A stretch of DNA of 64,000 nucleotides, from positions 39,986-103,985 of the forward strand of contig MCFE01000279.1 in the NCBI GenBank assembly GCA_002104905.1, read 5' to 3'. Positions 12,749 to 31,817 of this stretch are shown one piece after another. The stretch comes from Basidiobolus meristosporus CBS 931.73 (Eukaryota > Fungi > Basidiobolomycota). A model generated the notes under the pieces. That model saw only the letters and a program-made list of their open reading frames with translations, had not been told where the DNA came from and searched no databases. Both the position numbers and the translations under genes were made by a program. Every line of letters begins with the position of its first letter. Position 1 is the first letter of the stretch.

Positions 12749-13096
12749 TGTGATGATTATTAAGTTGTCACCTAAATATTCATGCTAACTTAGTCATATG
12801 GATCTTATTTTTTGATTAGCATTCTGTCCAGACCAATTTTGTATTGGGATTTACTTGGAATATTTTCACCAAATTATCAGGTATCCATATTATGATCTTT
12901 CTCAAAGTTGCACAAAAGCCCCCAAACTTTGTACACATATTCTTGGAACCTTCCTTAATAGACTCTACATGTTTTTTTGCTCTACTGCATCAAAAGTATA
13001 AATACCATACTTTTGATCAATAAATCTACAAGTGAGTAACATGTAAATCCTCTAGTTCTCAACATCACTTCTAATACTCCACAGAATATTCTAACA
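12749..13096 (+). mobile_element. Diverged copia-family LTR
   Basis: TG...TAACA termini; shares CACCTAAATATT, TTGGGATTTACTT, CCCCAAACTTTG and AAAAGTATAAATAC with the 15720 LTR; preceded by GGTTAGGAG. Confidence 0.7.
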
Positions 13097-15719: not shown

Positions 15720-16069
15720 TGTTGTAAAAATTTGTAATTCCACCTGAATACTTGCCAAACTTAGTCACTTAGATCATTACCTTCAAATCATAGGGAATAC
15801 TGACCAAATCACTTGTTGGGATTTACTTAGAATAGTCTCACCAAGATATCAGATACCCAGAACATGAAAATTCTCAAAGCTGTCCAAACAGCCCCAAACT
15901 TTGCACACATGTTCTTGGGACCTTCCTTAACCTATTCTACATGTTTGTAATGCTAAGACCAGGTAAAAGTATAAATACTACTTTTACATTCAATAAATCA
16001 TTAAGTGAAAACCACATAATCTACTTGTTCTCCCAATTCACTTCCAATATCTCCAATACTCTTACAACA
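15720..16069 (+). repeat. 5' LTR of the inner copia
   Basis: TGTTGTAAAAATT...CTTACAACA followed by a PBS-like motif. Confidence 0.92.
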
Positions 16070-19976: not shown

Positions 19977-20325
19977 TGTTGTAAAAATTAGTAATTCCAC
20001 CTAAATATTCACCTAACTTAGTCAATTATATCATTACCCTCAAATCCTAGAGAATACTGACCAAATTCCTTGTTGGGATTTACTTAGAATTTTTTCACCA
20101 AAATACCAGGTACCCAGAACATGAAATTTCTTAAAGTTATCCAAACAGTCCTAAACTTTGCACACATGTTCTTGGGACCTTCTTTAGCCTATTATATGTG
20201 CTTGTAATGGCAAGACCAGGTAAAAGTTTAAATACTACTTTTACATTCAATTAATCATTAAGTGAAAACCACATAATCTACTTGTTCTCCCAATCACTTC
20301 CAATATCTCCAAGACTCTTAAAAAA
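19977..20325 (+). repeat. 3' LTR of the inner copia
   Basis: TGTTGTAAAAATT start after the PPT; direct repeat of 15720-16069 with many substitutions. Confidence 0.92.
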
Positions 20326-20762: not shown

Positions 20763-21599
20763 AAGAGAAGGTAGTCTATTTACAGACCAGAGGCAGCTTT
20801 GAAAAAGGTAAGGTAGACAACTAGGGATGGCAATCTCAGGATTTTAAGGAGTACTGGAGGTGACTTGGAGAACTTACATGATATCAATATAGCATAGTGA
20901 GTTCACAAAGGGTATGCACAGTGATATTAGTTTTATATAGCTTCCCTTGGATAGATGTTCCAAATGTCAACAAAAAATTTGGGCAGGAAATGAAAAAGTC
21001 CATATACTATGCTATAATTGGCTAATTTAATGTGAATACCCTGGTGTAAATACAAATTTTACAGCACAAATAACATGAAGAAAATTTCTATTGAGACTTT
21101 TGATGAGGGAAATATCCTAGAAAGCAACGTACAAGATTGAAGGGCATCCAAGAGCTTTATGGTCCCAAATAATGCTCATTTGTAAGGCGATGCTCCAGAC
21201 AGGGCTGACTACACTGCCGCATGAGATATGTAGATATATATGTTATACTTTTTGCTTATCAGAATGGATTCAGCTGCCATGCCGACAGCCTTGGAGCAGT
21301 ACGAAAACCTCCACGCCCCCCCGCACACATTTTGAAATGGTGGACCTGGCTCACGTGTATATGCAGCCAGCATCTTGAGTTTCTAGTCGAGTATATGCGT
21401 AGTGTAAAGCAAGTATTATGCTCATCGCTCGTGGTACATATCGACCGCACGGCACATGAATCAAGGCGAAGCTAACACTTCTGACACCCTACTGTGCGTA
21501 ATTCCACCACCTGTGATCCAGATCTTGACGGTATAAAATTCGCGAGTGTATATGTGTCGTTGTTCACAAGTGGTAATTCTGGGACTGGTACTATTGTCC

Positions 21600-24131
21600 A
21601 TGTGGTCGTCACCTAATAAACTCTACTCTCTCATTTTGATTTTCGGCCTTGGTGAGTGCACCTTGCCTATCTGGTATTCGGCCCGCAATCACTTCACACA
21701 TCAACACTATGCCATTCGTATCAACAATGCTATCAGCCCACCAGAAGTGTCTGCGTTGTTAGGGTTACGGCACGTAGGCGTGATCAATGGTCTTCCCGAC
21801 TACCACCTGTTTGCCGCGGCCAAAGAAGATTTCATGGTACACGATCGGATCGAAGGATTTCTCGACAGCCCGACCCCATTCTCTTCATTGCACAAGCGAG
21901 GAATACCTTCATTGGAGCACATAGACCATATTCATAAGGAGGAATTGCGCCAGAGAGTTAAGCGAGAGCCTACACCATCTCACCAGATGCGGCCCAACAT
22001 CTCCACCCGTCAAGCCAGCATCCTCAATTTGGTGGACCCCGGATTTCGTAGACAGTGGCATCTGGTAGGCTATACGCATCCATTCGAGGAGGAACCTATT
22101 GTCGCTAACTATTCAACCATCGAACTTCTTCCAGAATAATCAAGAAGACGTAGGCAACGACCTGAATGTGCTGAAGGTATGGGAAAGCGGTAAGTTGGAA
22201 ACCACGTGGTTTGCCTGGAGAATTGTTCCTGACGGGGTCTTAGGAATTGTCGGTAAGGATGTGGTTGTGGCCCTGTTGGATGATGGACTGGACATGGACA
22301 GCGAGGATTTGACGCATAACTATGTATGTAACTTTGAGCAGTGTTTGATAGAGCCTCATTATTGACTTTCGCGGGAAGTTTTCCGAGGGATCGTATGATT
22401 TTAATGACCATAGTTTAGTGCCGAATCCAAAGCAGCCTGATGACTACCACGGAACCAGATGTGCAGGGGAGATTGCTGCGGCAAACAATAGTGTTTGTGG
22501 GGTGGGAGTAGCATTTGGGTCCAAAGTATCTGGTAACAAGCTTCGATGCACTCATGCTTGACATCCCCTTGCGCTAAACTCATTCTACCGCTTACAGGGA
22601 TACGGATACTTTCCGGGGCCATTAGCGATGTGGATGAGGCACTAGCCTTGGTTCATGAAAATCAAAAGAACCACATCTATTCATGTAGCTGGGGGCCACC
22701 GGACGACGGCAGATCCATGGAAGGCCCAAGTCAGGTTATTCTGGATGCTATGATATCTGGGATTACCAAGGGAAGAGGCGGGAAAGGTAGCATCTTTGTG
22801 TTCGCTACCGGTAACGGCGGAGAGTTCGAGGACAATTGCAACTTCGATGGGTACGCCAACAGCATCTACACAATATCTATCGGAGCAATTGACCGGTTCG
22901 ACCAACGACCCGCCTATTCAGAGAAATGCTCTGCACAATTAGCAGTCACCTACAGCAGCAATACCAACGGCGATGGAATTGTAATCTTTCCCTTGAGCAA
23001 TCTTGCAGACAAACGCTAACCATCTCTCCAACTAGTATACCACGGATGTGGGCAAGGATGCGTGTACCAATGCTCACGGTGGAACTTCTGCCGCCGCACC
23101 TTTGGCTGCGGGGGTGTTTGCACTGGTACTATCTATCCGGCCAGACCTTCACTGGAGAGACATTCAGCATCTAGCCGTGCGTACCGCACAGCCTTTCGCC
23201 CTAGATGATCCAGATTGGCAGCCAACCACAGCGGGACACCAGTTCAATCATAAATTTGGCTATGGCAAACTGGATGCTTTTCGAATGGTAGAAGCAGCAA
23301 AGGAATACCACTCAGTTGGTCCTCAGGTGCAATACAACTCTGGCGTGATGGAGGTTAACCAACAGATACCCTCCTCCAGTGCCGGGTTAAAGCATGCATT
23401 CATTGTATCTCCCAAGATAGCACAAACCCATTTCCTGAATCTCCTGGAGCATGTGACCGTTACGATCAATATGGTGCATCAACGGCGCGGCGATGTTGAA
23501 GTTTATCTAATCTCCCCAAACAACGTGACGTCCGTGTTGTCCCCAGGCCGAGAATATGACGACAGCGAAGAAGGATTTAGAGGCTGGACATTCATGACTG
23601 TAAAGCACTGGTAAGTGTGCAAAGAGAGTAACCACATTACCGACACTAACCGGTATCAGGGATGAGCCAGTTGTAGGGGAGTGGTCGCTGCTGGTCATGG
23701 ATCAAAAGAATCCTGAGAAGGTCGGAACACTGCAGTCCTGGAGTTTGACATTTTTCGGGGCAAAATCTGAGCCAGTAACGCCTAGCCCCGGAGAGAAACC
23801 CACGAATAATGCATCAAGCACAATCTCTAGCACCATAACCTCCCCTACAAGCCTTAGGTATCCACTAATTGCAATATTTGGGCTTGTAGTGCTTGTCGTA
23901 GCTACAACTTGTCGACTGAACAGAGCTAATCCTGAATCTGCGAAAGCATATCTAAAATTACAGGACAATGATCGAGGAACAGAGACTGGCCCTGCCGCGG
24001 ACCAACTTTTAGACGCGTTGGAAGCAGAGTCGTATCATGCCGACTCCGATGAATCCGAGATTACTGAAATCACCGACATGCCCAATATATCGGCATGGCT
24101 GCCTAAAAACATGCCATTTTCAAGACAATAG
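21600..24131 (+). CDS. KEX2: Kexin (Kex2-like subtilisin proprotein convertase), multi-exon
   Basis: Signal peptide; pro-domain ending RQRVKR; [10 protein letters not shown]; catalytic D (LDDG), H ([11 protein letters not shown]), oxyanion N (ATGNGG) and S (HGGTSAAAP); P domain (LEHVTV, RRGDV, MTVKHW); C-terminal TM. GT-AG introns, first at 22065. Confidence 0.96.
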
Positions 24132-24417
24132 AGCCATTCGCCTATCTAGCAGTGGTCTTGTTGTTAGTCTTATACCCACCAATACTGCTAGATATTTCGA
24201 TTTCAATAAAAATGTAGAAAGCTAACGTGTTTGACCAATGCAAGTTCCAGGATAGACTTGGGAATTACAGCGGAGAAGCACCATGCAATCCGAAAGAAAG
24301 ATGGATCCATCCATCGATGGCGGCAAGAATAGAAACGCGGTGTTTCATTCGAGGGCGAAATGATCCTTTATTTCATAAAGATTCAATACAGTTAACAAAA
24401 AGGCTGAGCGGGGTAGC

Positions 24418-24795
24418 TTATTCCTCATCGGATTCCTCCTCCTCTTCCTCTTGGTTAGCAATGTTGAAGTATCTGAGTTCGTAAGTGGTTTTGTTGGTGG
24501 CAATAACACGAAGCCAGTCACGGAGGTTGTGCTTCTTCAAGAACTTCTTGGTAAGGTACTTGAGGTAACGCTTGGAGAAAGCTTGGGTGGAGACAACGGT
24601 GATCTTGGCATCATCACCACGCTTGATGGAAACGATATCTCCGAGGTTGTTGGTGCGACCTTGGACCTTGATGCGATCGTGAAGGAACTTCTCGAAGGCA
24701 GCAGCATCGAAAATCTTATCGTTAGCGGGACCGCTGCAGTCCAAGGTGAACTTGTAAGTGACCTTCTTGGCTTTGGTTTGTCTGGCGGCAGGCAT
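24418..24795 (-). CDS. RPL22: 60S ribosomal protein eL22
   Basis: [30 protein letters not shown]...[27 protein letters not shown]...YELRYFNI with acidic tail. A possible upstream intron acceptor lies just before the ATG. Confidence 0.96.
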
Positions 24796-25214
24796 AGCTA
24801 ACTTTAGTCAATCACCAACGGGTTAAAAGAGAGGGAATAAACAAGCCGCTGATCATTACAATTTATTCACTTCAGAATGGTTCCTATCGTCTCATTGGCC
24901 ACTCACATTCTGATCGTTTTTCGCCATCATAATCACGTGGATTATTTCTCATCTCATTTGATTGTCGATATTATTAACCTCATTCAGATATTTTTGATTT
25001 ACAACACTTGGATTAAATATAGATTACTTCTTTAGTACGTCCTTACATATACGTATATACGTCTTCGACAGGTAGATTCTTGGAAAACCTCATGTGGTTG
25101 TTAGGTATTCGAAGGGAATATATCTCACGAATATAGTGATGTTGGCGATACTTCGGCATACTTTCTGATTTGGTACCCACTAGAAGCATGGCTGTAGCGC
25201 AGATATATTGAAGT

Positions 25215-25724
25215 TTAGTTCACTGAGCATTGAAGCTCCTGCTCTAAACTGATAAGCGGACAAAGGTCTCGTTTATGAAATTTGGGGGTCAGATTCTTCA
25301 AAAGGTCACCCTGGACAGCCATGGTGTCCTGAAGGGTGGGAGGAGAGAAAGCTGGTAAGACCCGCTTGGTGCGCTTCTTCAGTACCTGTTTCTCAGGCTG
25401 GCCTTGAATCTGGCTGAATATCTCCAGTTCACGCTTTCTCAAATTTCCAATACTATGATCCACCACCAACTGGGCAAAGCGTTGCTCGACTGAACCTTGA
25501 GAATGCTCGTATTCCTTTGGTGTGGAGAAAAGATGATAGCCCTCTATATCCCCCACAGTCCCCACATAATCTATCTTCAACAAAGATGCTATGTCGTTGG
25601 GTGAAGCAGAATGCGGCTTTAACTTCAGAGTATAATAATTGTGTGTCTCATATCGCTCTAATAAACAAGCATATGAAGAGATGAGAAGAACAAGCACCAG
25701 ATACAATTGACCGGCAAAATACAT
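25215..25724 (-). CDS. Secreted stand-alone kexin-type pro-domain protein (169 aa from MYFAG), no catalytic domain
   Basis: Hydrophobic signal (LYLVLVLLISSYAC), then THNYYTLKL..SPNDIASLL..YVG..GYHLF..LRKR..KQVLKKRTKR, which aligns motif by motif with the pro-domain of the neighbouring KEX2. Stop at 25215. Confidence 0.75.
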   Translation of the reverse strand: MYFAGQLYLVLVLLISSYACLLERYETHNYYTLKLKPHSASPNDIASLLKIDYVGTVGDIEGYHLFSTPKEYEHSQGSVEQRFAQLVVDHSIGNLRKRELEIFSQIQGQPEKQVLKKRTKRVLPAFSPPTLQDTMAVQGDLLKNLTPKFHKRDLCPLISLEQELQCSVN

Positions 25725-26879
25725 GTCAGTGACGTTTACCTGCTGGAGAAGGCAGTAAAAGTGGAAGCCACATTCAGACCAAGCCCCTTTATTGCTTGGA
25801 TTTTGATTGCGGCTTAAATCTGAATACACCCAGACTAGTTGATGTATTTGAGCCTGATTTTCGAAATGGTAGATTCCAACTGAATGAAAGATCTCCATGC
25901 AATCGGAATCCACCCCATCGTTCATCACGAACAGTACCATCGTATCAACGATGAAAGACACATGTTTTATAAAGATGGGGTGCAGCCAAAGGGCTATCCA
26001 TAAAGCATCAATGACTCTATGAAGCGACGCTGACTAGTTTTAGTCCGAAATCATCGCCTGGAGCATCCGGAATACTCAACCACAAACGATGAAAAATTAT
26101 CTGCAAAGGTATGGTGGAGAAGCTGCTGTATTGGCGAGGAAGAGATGGGGCTGGGATAGCATCAACTGCACGCATATTCAGGAGCCTTGATGGCAACAGA
26201 AATTACTGAGCCCATTGAGCAAAAAGCATCTACAGCAAAAGTACTGAAGATGACGCACCGAGCATTCGATCAATATCAAGTTAGTGCAGCATATTCTGCA
26301 CATCAATGCAGCGATATGGTCGTAGAAAACAACAGCAAGCCATGGACTGGAAGATCATGTGCGTCTTGCTCTCGAAGGATTCTTTCCTCGGGGTTGGCTG
26401 TTTCAAAGTTTGGGCTCTGAGCAACCAAGGACGAAACATATTCTCCCGATGACCAAGCGTGAACGAAGCATATGATCTCGAGTCAGGCAGGCAGCAGCTT
26501 GAGTTTGGAGAGCTGTACTATTCCTGCTCATCGAAGCTGGCCGGCGCTTTCTTCGAATTTCATTGGAAAGTGGGATTGTGTTCTATTTTAGTTTGATATA
26601 CAGTATATGACAGCGCGCTCTTTGGCGGTGGACTAATGGTATGTTTCATTTTAGGATTATAGTTGCAAAATCTGTGCCCCGCACAGCGTGGGTATGGTTT
26701 CTCTCGCTTTTCCAACTCGTAAATATAAATAAAAGGATCAACAGGAGTCATGTAGTGCCCTTACTTTTCGTCATTCTATTCTCAAGAACGGGCTCTCTTG
26801 CTAAAGATACCATTTTGTGACTTGATATAATACTATCTGCTATCCGTCTAGAGTCCCCATTTGAAAAACATTAAGTAGG

Positions 26880-28260
<1,381 letters not shown>

Positions 28261-31016
28261 ATTTGGAGCAGGCGCATGAAGATTGAATATATTATTGCAA
28301 GCTGGTGCTAAGGACTGCTGAGTTCACAACCTCATTTCTCAGTTTCTTTCAAATATATGTAGAACAAATCGATATTGTATATGTAGATAATGAGCAAATT
28401 AGATCATTTCTATTCTTCGTTTATAAATACTGATTTCCTGTGTAATGACTTCGACCACACTTTGAATCAATATTGGATTCTTCGGATTAATTCATGAAGC
28501 CATTGCCATTCTCCCTCTTATTTTCTATTCATTTCTTACATCATGTTTTTTACTTTTTTACCGGAATAGTAAATTCGAAAGAACACTTCTTCAACGTTTT
28601 TCTGAGTCCACAAATTCCCCCAGTATAGCAATTAATAGCACCTTCATCGTTGAGATAAACAAGCATTTACAGTTGCGAGGATTGGTCCCTTACATACTCA
28701 GTGGTGAAAGAAACTTAATGGTTTCTAAGGGGCTAGTTCAGAATAAGCCATAACAGCAGTCTGTGAGATAGCATAGTCTTCTCATAACCTCAAGTGGGCC
28801 GATAATTTTGCTCTGCGAGCTGGTAAGCACGAGCTGTGATTATACTGTAGAAAGGTGTATATTTCACAACGCAACAAGTGACTATGCTTCAAGGACTCTA
28901 TTCTTCTTTTGCTAATGGCGTTGGAAGTATAGATTTCTAAACGCTATGGAATGTAACAATGTATCGGACCCACAAATTCCGAGTGTTCATAAGTAGTCTG
29001 CCTGAGGTCAAATTCGCGATAAACGTATATTTGATGAAAACCGGTTGCGACTCGATCAACGTGCGTTTACTAACCTTGGTCTCCTTCGATCCCCTAATAA
29101 TATCTCCAATGGCTATGATTGGCGGAATCAAAAAACACCAGTGCTACAACTAAGACATAACTCGATGAAAACATGGTGGATATTATCGTGGAGTTGCCCA
29201 TTTGCAGCTCTTTGCCCCATTTCGATAAAATATTCTCTTTGATTTTATGCTCGTTTTCTCACTAACCCCAGAAATGGGCTGAGGAGAGCAAGCCGACATT
29301 TAATTCACAGCTGAGGGCTTTGTATATACGTATTCCGAATTGCAATTCCGAAGCGTTGTCCAAAAGGCCAGAGGGCCGTATGGTATTTTTTACTATAGTA
29401 CCAGGGTATGTCTCAAGAGCTCAGCGCAAATATACAACGTGTAAGAAATACAACAGCAGAATATGGTATCTCCACCACAATCCCAAGCATGTTGAGAACG
29501 TACACGCTATAGTGAAGTTTGATCGTCCTCTGCATATTTCCTGGGCCCAATGAGCCACATTCTAAATCCCCCAAAGGAAGTAGAATATGGGGTATTGGGC
29601 AATACAACCTAATCTTCTGTAATCTATCTCGAACCCTAATTCAACGCACTTACAAGTGATAAGTTTAACCGAAGAGAAACCTCTACACTGGCAACAGCAA
29701 TACCAATGTATATATCCAGTAGCAACAATCATGTGACGCCCTTCTGAGCAGAAAGGAGCAAGCCGTAGCCAGTTTAACTCTATGAAGTGCTAAGCCACAT
29801 GAATCAAGACTATCAGCTATTGACTAGTATGTAATTGGAAAATAAAGGGCCAACAACCCCAAACTTTCAATATCTAAGCCTGCTCTGCAACTTCATTCCG
29901 GTGCCAGTTCTGAATACATGCATTCCAATGAGTGAAGGAGCTTAAGGAGGGTCGGTTACACCGTCATGTTGAGCAAGAATTATATTAACGCTGGATCCTT
30001 GTATAACACTGGTTATACCTCCGAGATGAACGCTAATTGGGTTTAAATAGCTGACTCATCCATCGTGTGAAATCTTTTGACATTCCTCCTGCTGCGTTTG
30101 AGCAGCATTCAAGTGTCGTGTGGATATAGGCAACCGCCACTTTTAATGACAGGAGGGCGAACTCTATGGTCGTATGAAGTCAGACAGGCACAAACATCAA
30201 GCCGGAAAAAATGCACATGAAATGACATGAGTGCTGCCTATTACTGATGGATGCTGGTCAAGGTGGAAGATGAAGATCCATAGCATTTCGTGCAGTTGCT
30301 GATAAGCTCAGCAGTGATATCATACAGGAGGGATCCGCCTTATATCTATGCCTTTTTGGTTCAAACGGGGTGATTTTACGGTGGCTATAACCCAAACACC
30401 TCTTGTTGATCTGGGAACCATGATGATCCCCATCATTTCAACGATGAATGATCCAAAACCGGCACCACAGTTTGTGCTCCTCACATCCCTTCCTACCGAA
30501 GAAATAGGCGGATCTTAGATTCGTTCCGATAGGCAAACGCATGTGTGGTCCGACGCTCCAATTCACAAGTCGAGTCGCTAACCAGATTGTATCCGCTGAT
30601 AAGATGTAAATCATTGTATAAATGCGTACTCCGATGGTTGCATCGAATTAATATTGGCCCGCAGAATTCATTAAGTGTCATATGTCCATACCTGTGACAA
30701 TCTCGTAGATGCAGAAGTATTTTACTTGATTCAATCGAACTCGTATTGCAAAATGCTCTGATCTGGATTCTACGGGAGCACATTTCCCTTTAAGCCAAGA
30801 ATGCAGGTTCGGGGGATCCTATCTTTGTGGGGGCATTGTGACGTGAGACTCAGGAACCCATTTTCCTTTTCAATTGCCCCAACTGTAGGGAAAAAATCTC
30901 AAATTCATTCACAGCACTCATGATATATGACAGGGAGAACGTATATTTTAAAGAGTTTCTAGGTCGCTTGGTGAGAGTGACACTGTTCCTTGACTTAGTC
31001 AAATACATCAAGCACT

Positions 31017-31817
<801 letters not shown>

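Follow-up and report, generated by a model that had tools for sequence, protein, structure and literature searches.

Why should a fungus encode a kexin-type pro-domain as a protein of its own, close to a KEX2 gene that still carries one? This question is raised by a locus of Basidiobolus meristosporus CBS 931.73, for which we analyzed one stretch of 64,000 nucleotides (hereafter the window). A first-pass annotation, made from the DNA letters and their reading frames, had noticed an intact ORF with a signal peptide and a kexin-type pro-domain about 1 kb from KEX2, and had proposed either a dedicated regulator of the convertase or a Kex2 substrate that releases small peptides.

A single-exon gene close to KEX2

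The 169-aa frame of the minus strand was indeed found open from its ATG at 25724 (Table 1), and the annotation of the record (GCA_002104905.1, contig MCFE01000279.1) gives the same single-exon product. The spacing first described also holds: 420 bp separate the gene from the start of RPL22 (24795) and about 1.08 kb separate it from the stop of KEX2 (24131). RPL22, which is encoded on the same strand as the pro-domain gene, and KEX2 are convergent, and the ORF pieces of KEX2 show the GTSAAAP motif and a P-domain. The pro-domain reading frame stays open upstream to 25961, that is, for 79 codons (25725-25961, minus) and contains three further ATGs in frame. B. ranarum does not share this extension; there, a stop lies five codons before the ATG of the orthologue.

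That orthologue (P0002; contig JASJQH010007333) is annotated as a single-exon gene of 179 aa and is 52% identical to the window protein (E 1.7e-42). The hydrophobic N-terminus of the window protein, a probable signal peptide judged from its sequence, is aligned in register with those of 36 kexin first exons and forms a helix in the predicted model. The internal dibasic site LRKR is invariant in both species, lies opposite the LHKR, LQKR, LSKR or LEKR of real kexins and falls in the model within the loop after helix 79-92. The primary cleavage-site motif KKRTKR is also invariant between the two species, and its K120 and R121 are nearly invariant over 38 aligned sequences.

Table 1. Coordinates in the window of the pro-domain gene, its parts and its neighbors.
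Feature	Position	Strand	Remarks
Pro-domain gene CDS	25215..25724	minus	Single exon, 169 aa + stop; ATG 25724, stop 25215-25217
N-terminal hydrophobic segment, ~residues 1-20	25665..25724	minus	Putative signal peptide, from sequence
Pro-domain part	25362..25649	minus	AF2 pLDDT >90 over most; 73% identity to orthologue
Internal dibasic site LRKR, residues 95-98	25431..25442	minus	Coincides with the secondary cleavage site of kexins
Primary cleavage-site motif KKRTKR, residues 116-121	25362..25379	minus	Followed by VLP, like kexin autoprocessing sites
48-aa tail	25215..25361	minus	Former linker, degraded DPxF..QWHL remnant (~25254-25280), 12 extra codons, stop
Tail Cys pair	25260-25262, 25227-25229	minus	Conserved
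KEX2	21552..24131	plus	Intact, annotated 721 aa, several introns, Peptidase_S8 + P_proprotein domains
KEX2 exon 1	21552-22064	plus	Ends right after QWHL; GT donor at 22065
RPL22e	24418..24795	minus	PF01776, 125 aa; directly downstream of the pro-domain gene, same strand

The first-pass annotation had argued that no room is left for a catalytic domain and had named splicing to a downstream catalytic exon as the finding that would overturn its reading. Using full-length kexins as tblastn queries, we found no second S8 or P-domain coding sequence in the 64-kb window outside KEX2, and none at the B. ranarum orthologous locus including 5 kb downstream. RPL22 lies 420 bp downstream in the window, and in B. 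ranarum an MCM gene begins 566 bp past the stop. In both species, an in-frame stop follows 12-15 codons beyond the position where exon 1 of kexin genes ends, and the site of the splice donor has decayed (GTC/ATC). Since an intron interrupts the kexin genes here exactly behind QWHL, the frame might be taken for the first exon of a longer gene with a distant catalytic exon, or for a mis-annotation. However, the lack of any such exon in the window or in the 5 kb examined in B. ranarum, the neighboring genes within 420-570 bp downstream, and the degraded donor followed by a stop in both species make this reading hardly credible.

Homology to the first exon of kexin genes

The six motif pairs that had been drawn between the predicted protein and KEX2 are all present, in register with KEX2 exon 1; KEX2 was treated exon by exon throughout. 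By BLASTP, the pro-domain protein is 25% identical to the neighboring KEX2 exon 1 over 126 aa (E 5e-9), and by tblastn the B. ranarum orthologue is 34% identical to the same exon over 130 aa (E 1e-18). In the alignment of 38 sequences, the protein follows kexin exon 1 collinearly, beginning at the signal peptide and continuing through the pro-domain core, LRKR, KKRTKR and the linker to a remnant of the DPxF..QWHL motif. Identity of the free copy to canonical pro-domains from the kexins of other fungi reaches 33%, compared with 22-25% to the neighboring KEX2.

A profile built from both stand-alone proteins was searched against 1.84 billion representative proteins (E <= 1e-3). The search yielded 46 proteins, 44 of them besides the two queries (E 2e-11 to 1e-3), and those among the 44 that permitted a judgment are either kexins of full length or first exons of kexin genes. 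Short matches were read as first exons because they end in DPxFxxQWHL followed by V, a residue that arises when the GT at the start of intron 1 is translated. Most of the first-exon entries that reach the motif end in QWHLV and junk, while others are cut shorter and were read as such exons or as truncated calls; two of the matches, P0044 and P0011, are without the QWHL motif. Many of the database proteins (P0003-P0046), 100-300 aa in length, are kexin first exons run through the intron-1 donor and could be mistaken for stand-alone pro-domains. Neither this profile search nor a word-index search found further stand-alone copies beyond both Basidiobolus genomes.

The Pfam family of these pro-domains, PF16470, scores 11.7 bits on the pro-domain protein (E 0.42), which is under the gathering cut-off of 25.5 bits. 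In the Pfam search PF16470 also gave no match on the authentic KEX2 exon 1 next door, and it matches 23 of the 38 aligned relatives at E <= 0.01. Since an authentic KEX2 exon 1 is missed while 23 relatives match, we consider the model insensitive in the Basidiobolus lineage; the link of the free protein to the PF16470 family is transitive, because its own score is sub-threshold while the sequences aligned with it match. PF05922 (Inhibitor_I9) gave no match on the pro-domain protein at E <= 1, and the I9 cluster surfaced only as an Atlas feature lead (0.88). The two-sequence profile alone retrieved no pro-domain from the solved structures, the best match being NusA (E 1.7). The protein thus shares with PF16470 pro-domains their homology, multibasic primary site, internal secondary site and fold, but neither reaches the gathering cut-off nor continues into S8 and P domains. 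The description of the protein as a complete kexin-type pro-domain is borne out by the alignment to real kexins and by the predicted fold, but not by the Pfam model.

Predicted structure of the free pro-domain

The AF2 model of the protein has a mean pLDDT of 83, with values >90 across most of residues 30-115, while the tail is modeled at pLDDT ~52. The model consists of a strand (28-35), a helix (42-49), two strands (52-56 and 63-69), a helix (79-92), a short helix (97-103) and a strand (106-113). Foldseek ranks chains of the PC1/3 pro-domain crystallized with furin first to third (probability 1.0, TM(target) 0.66-0.67, E 8e-3 to 2e-2), and the same PC1/3 pro-domain takes the top three places in VIA-align (Z 5.7, rmsd 2.7-3.0 A, 66-72 residues aligned); the best chains are 9fie_B, 9fid and 9fic. 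VIA-align places residues 26..121 of the model on residues 30..110 of the PC1/3 chain, with residue 121 opposite the last chain residue 110. In addition, the A2 profile matches 1KN6 (E 8.8e-7), and the Atlas single-sequence model is also nearest to kexin and PCSK5 precursors. Because the ferredoxin-like fold is small and common, the Z values are modest, and for this reason the fold call was weighted on the rank order and on the match of the A2 profile to 1KN6. The sequence and the model together support the conclusion that the free protein keeps every element that a kexin pro-domain needs for docking into the kexin active site.

Conservation in B. ranarum and purifying selection

The B. ranarum genome was used to examine synteny, comparing window 24131-31650 with L001:1-11439. 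Synteny is kept on the upstream side, with 71-79% identity for the divergently oriented Forkhead gene and 93% for ADK. The downstream order differs, with MCM in B. ranarum versus RPL22 and KEX2 in the window. The B. ranarum KEX2 exon 1 lies on another short contig and is not beside the pro-domain gene within 5 kb in this fragmented assembly. Between ADK and Forkhead, B. ranarum L001 carries Ubiq_cyt_C_chap and NADH-oxidoreductase genes without a match in the window. The Forkhead gene of the window (26871-28257, plus) is annotated as 108 aa and matches the 433-aa B. ranarum Forkhead over ~1.4 kb, a match that includes a 359-aa ORF at 26880-27959, and the 108-aa annotation is probably truncated. 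Elsewhere in the window, three segments (~12890-12996, 15795-16006 and 20052-20251) resemble L001:12188-13663 in translation (38-64% over 25-56 aa); these short similarities look like a dispersed repeat or mobile element common to both genomes.

Over the 96 codons of the pro-domain part, the two species share 73% amino acid identity, with dN of 0.18-0.19 and dS >1. The dN/dS ratio is 0.10 (NG86) to 0.14 (ML), for one species pair with saturated dS; only two genomes carry the gene, and the ratio therefore rests on a single pair. Identity by codon position is 0.81/0.84/0.50. The tail is 33% identical to that of the orthologue. As a yardstick, KEX2's own pro-domain was compared between the window and B. 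ranarum (P0008, L002:2995-3465), giving 54% identity and dN/dS ~0.34; the orthology of this pair is assumed, and synteny is uninformative on it, since nothing in the L002 flank resembles the window. Over the 87 columns common to the four sequences, 62 are identical between species in the free copy versus 47 in the cis copy (Fisher p 0.028). Both cleavage sites, together with the strand that would insert into the active site, fall within the most conserved block of the free copy, GNLRKRELEIFSQIQG..EKQVLKKRTKR. A His (H90) located eight residues ahead of the internal site is shared by both species, and any role for it is speculative.

These comparisons indicate purifying selection on the free copy, with a constraint no weaker than that on the pro-domain of KEX2 itself. 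They agree with the earlier suggestion that the gene is not a fresh dead fragment, since the frame is open in both species although dS is saturated and dN/dS is 0.10-0.14. The checks by dN/dS and synteny proposed at that time thus gave a low ratio and a conserved flank on the Forkhead/ADK side in B. ranarum.

Origin of the gene and of its tail

In an ML tree of 38 exon-1 sequences, one clade (89/82) unites the pair of free copies (100/95) with the pair of Basidiobolus KEX2 exon 1 sequences (100/100). The stem branch of KEX2 is long (1.22) and that of the free copy shorter (0.59). This pattern in the sequences fits a duplication of the KEX2 5' end that would have occurred in the Basidiobolus lineage before both species split. 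With its long branch, 54% identity, dN/dS ~0.34 and no Pfam match, KEX2's own pro-domain diverges faster than the free copy.

The tail contains what appears to be left of the start of a catalytic domain. The DPxF..QWHL motif is degraded to TPKF..DLCPL in the window and to NQCELV in B. ranarum, where CAA TGT GAA CTA GTC lies opposite CAG TGG CAT CTG GTA. The register of this remnant differs between two alignments, and a correspondence of the W to the C is therefore only a possibility. From their position, the 12-15 codons past the motif may be former intron; at the DNA level, the tail shows no convincing similarity to KEX2 intron 1, so that position is the basis of this assignment. We infer from the sequence that the gene was born by duplication of a first exon, with read-through past a dead splice donor.

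The tail site FHKR, which had been noticed together with the 48-aa tail and the stop, is present in the window but absent from B. ranarum, and it lies opposite FRRQ/FRKQ of the ancestral DPGF..QWHL motif. Given this absence and this alignment, FHKR is probably a relic, and we rejected it as a third conserved processing site. The earlier idea that an extra KR site releases small peptides is accordingly weakened. In contrast to the rest of the diverged tail, C-x10-C-S-V near the stop is kept in both species (window 25227-25262, minus; L001:8795-8836), and the mature protein has no cysteine besides this pair. The C-S-V-N end of the B. meristosporus protein resembles a CaaX box; prenylation was rejected because the orthologue ends in CSVEGLF and the protein is probably luminal.

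A possible cleavable brake on Kex2

Isolated convertase pro-domains are competitive inhibitors with Ki down to the sub-nanomolar range, and the last four residues of a pro-domain fill the P1-P4 pockets of the protease (PMC12405487). Their secondary site makes such pro-domains "both substrates and inhibitors", with an inactivation that depends on pH (PMC12405487). We favor a role of the free protein as a brake in trans because it keeps all such inhibitor and substrate elements under strong constraint. Our leading interpretation, which we hold tentatively and at somewhat less than an even chance, is that the gene is a genus-restricted duplicate of KEX2 exon 1 that selection has kept as a free, cleavable brake on Kex2 in the secretory pathway; it draws on the sequence, on the model and on analogy with known pro-domains.

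In such a scheme, the protein, built of a signal peptide, a full kexin-type pro-domain that retains its two processing sites, and a new short tail, would enter the ER and then meet Kex2 in the late Golgi. There its basic C-terminal residues would occupy the S1-S4 pockets, in the docking mode of a pro-domain. Kex2 would cut after KR121, and the freed pro-domain would stay bound as a tight competitive inhibitor of the product type. A cut at the internal LRKR98 would end the inhibition, resulting in a self-limiting brake or buffer on Kex2 that is supplied in trans. Because the internal cleavage site is retained, the protein would at best be a transient inhibitor. Points against the brake are also that KEX2 keeps its own pro-domain, so that a second copy is not obviously needed; that an inhibitor role leaves the conserved Cys pair of the tail unexplained; and that in B. 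ranarum the gene is not found beside KEX2.

Alternatively, the protein may be a Kex2 substrate in which the pro-domain serves only as carrier and docking module, and the product would be all or some of the 48-aa tail, perhaps with a disulfide linking the two conserved cysteines. A canonical KR|VLP site precedes the tail, C-x10-C-S-V and the approximate end of the ORF are conserved within an otherwise diverged sequence, and the protein is probably secreted, as judged from its sequence. However, the tail is the least conserved part of the protein (33%) and the pro-domain the most (73%), B. ranarum lacks the FHKR site whose cleavage would release a Cys peptide of 17 aa, inspection of the 169 aa by eye revealed no internal repeats such as known Kex2-processed repeat precursors have, and the tail is modeled with low confidence, so that we give the peptide precursor a minor share of probability. 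Quite unlikely, in our opinion, is a folding chaperone for Kex2 acting in trans, of the type of Aeromonas ORF2, that would partly replace a drifted cis pro-domain. The cis pro-domain of KEX2 does evolve faster (stem 1.22 versus 0.59; identity 54% versus 73%; dN/dS ~0.34 versus ~0.12; no PF16470 match), external chaperones for kexin-family proteases exist (PMC5638518), and 3wqb_B is among the structural matches; but KEX2 retains a complete pro-domain with both cleavage sites, cis pro-domains normally suffice, and partners of the ORF2 type serve propeptide-less proteases.

Whether the gene has any role at all may also be questioned, since it began as a truncated copy of exon 1, is found in two genomes only and carries a decayed catalytic-domain start in its tail. 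A non-functional relic of a partial duplication, unexpressed or without a role, would nevertheless hardly have kept its ORF open in both species while synonymous sites became saturated, nor its start and end positions; the codon-position pattern and dN/dS of 0.10-0.14 indicate a constraint at least equal to that on the working KEX2 pro-domain, and we regard the relic as improbable. We give similarly little credence, and slightly less, to a secreted inhibitor directed not at the fungus's own Kex2 but at foreign kexin/furin-type proteases, such as those produced by fungal competitors or encountered in the animal gut that Basidiobolus inhabits. The putative signal peptide without a membrane anchor or ER-retention signal would permit export, the free copy is nearer to the kexin pro-domains of other fungi (up to 33%) than to the neighboring KEX2 (22-25%), and pro-domains are known to cross-inhibit other members of the convertase family (PMC12405487). 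Nonetheless, such a protein would pass the fungus's own Kex2 carrying two good Kex2 sites and would probably be cut before export, and we found no evidence of diversifying selection.

If the brake on Kex2 is the true function, a trans version shaped by evolution would reveal which features of a pro-domain matter, among them the basic P1-P6 stretch, the retained secondary site and the added Cys-containing tail. The pair of genes also allows one to test whether the constraint on a cis chaperone is relaxed when a trans copy is present. In the farthest-reaching reading, which we consider unlikely, the intramolecular chaperone/inhibitor of a eukaryotic convertase would in part have moved into a gene of its own: after the duplication the free copy would have stayed canonical and tightly constrained, the cis copy would have been freed to drift, and the dose of a separate, self-destructing pro-domain would set the activity or maturation of Basidiobolus Kex2, as a natural and genetically separable titrator of a kexin. 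Apart from function, the locus provides a clean example of gene birth by duplication of a first exon, with a scope of one genus and two genomes.

Comparison with known pro-domains and convertase regulators

Few natural proteins are known to us that inhibit or regulate convertases of the kexin/furin class, and we know of none that is a plain free copy of a pro-domain. The literature that we searched, with incomplete coverage, contained no description of a stand-alone kexin/furin-type pro-domain gene. In the secretory pathway, 7B2 and proSAAS each control one particular convertase and themselves undergo cleavage at basic sites. Unlike the Basidiobolus protein, they are not derived from a pro-domain, and their sequences and folds are unrelated to it; 7B2 is also covered in PMC2141705.

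The closest counterparts are the cis pro-domains of kexin and furin (PF16470; 1KN6, 9FIC, 9FIE), with which the Basidiobolus protein shares homologous sequence, the predicted fold, the primary multibasic C-terminal site, an N-terminal signal peptide and, in the loop that follows helix 2, the internal secondary site. Unlike these, the free protein has its own gene without a catalytic or P domain, ends in a 48-aa tail with two conserved Cys and scores below the Pfam threshold. Free pro-domains separated by engineering are under development as furin inhibitors (PMC12405487).

Stand-alone inhibitors of subtilases that resemble propeptides include PBI2, POIA1, SPI-1, TgMIC5 and SUB1-ProM, the last of which is encoded beside subtilase genes (PMC6993865). 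The MEROPS I9 inhibitors (yeast PBI2, Pleurotus POIA1, Arabidopsis SPI-1), Toxoplasma MIC5 and Plasmodium SUB1-ProM are, like the Basidiobolus protein, small separate products with a propeptide fold, and by analogy tight binding in the protease cleft would be expected of it as well. They target S8A subtilases, mostly without clear sequence similarity to a propeptide, for which convergence has been suggested, whereas the Basidiobolus protein is of the S8B (kexin) type. It further differs from them in being a recognizable recent duplicate of exon 1 of its neighbor without a PF05922 match, and in keeping both of the cleavage sites by which it could be destroyed.

In Aeromonas sobria, a separate gene beside that of the kexin-family protease ASP encodes ORF2, an external chaperone and temporary inhibitor of this protease (PMC5638518; PDB 3WQB); in Basidiobolus the distance is ~1.08 kb in the window, and the two genes are not within 5 kb of each other in the fragmented assembly of B. 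ranarum. ORF2 places its C-terminal end in the active site, inhibits temporarily and is later degraded by the protease, and its structure is a weak match to our model (Z 4.1). However, ORF2 is bacterial and has no sequence relationship to the Basidiobolus protein, and its partner protease lacks a propeptide while Basidiobolus KEX2 keeps a full pro-domain. What sets the Basidiobolus locus apart is a stand-alone pro-domain of the S8B/kexin type, in a eukaryote, as a recognizable duplicate of exon 1 beside a protease that still bears its own.
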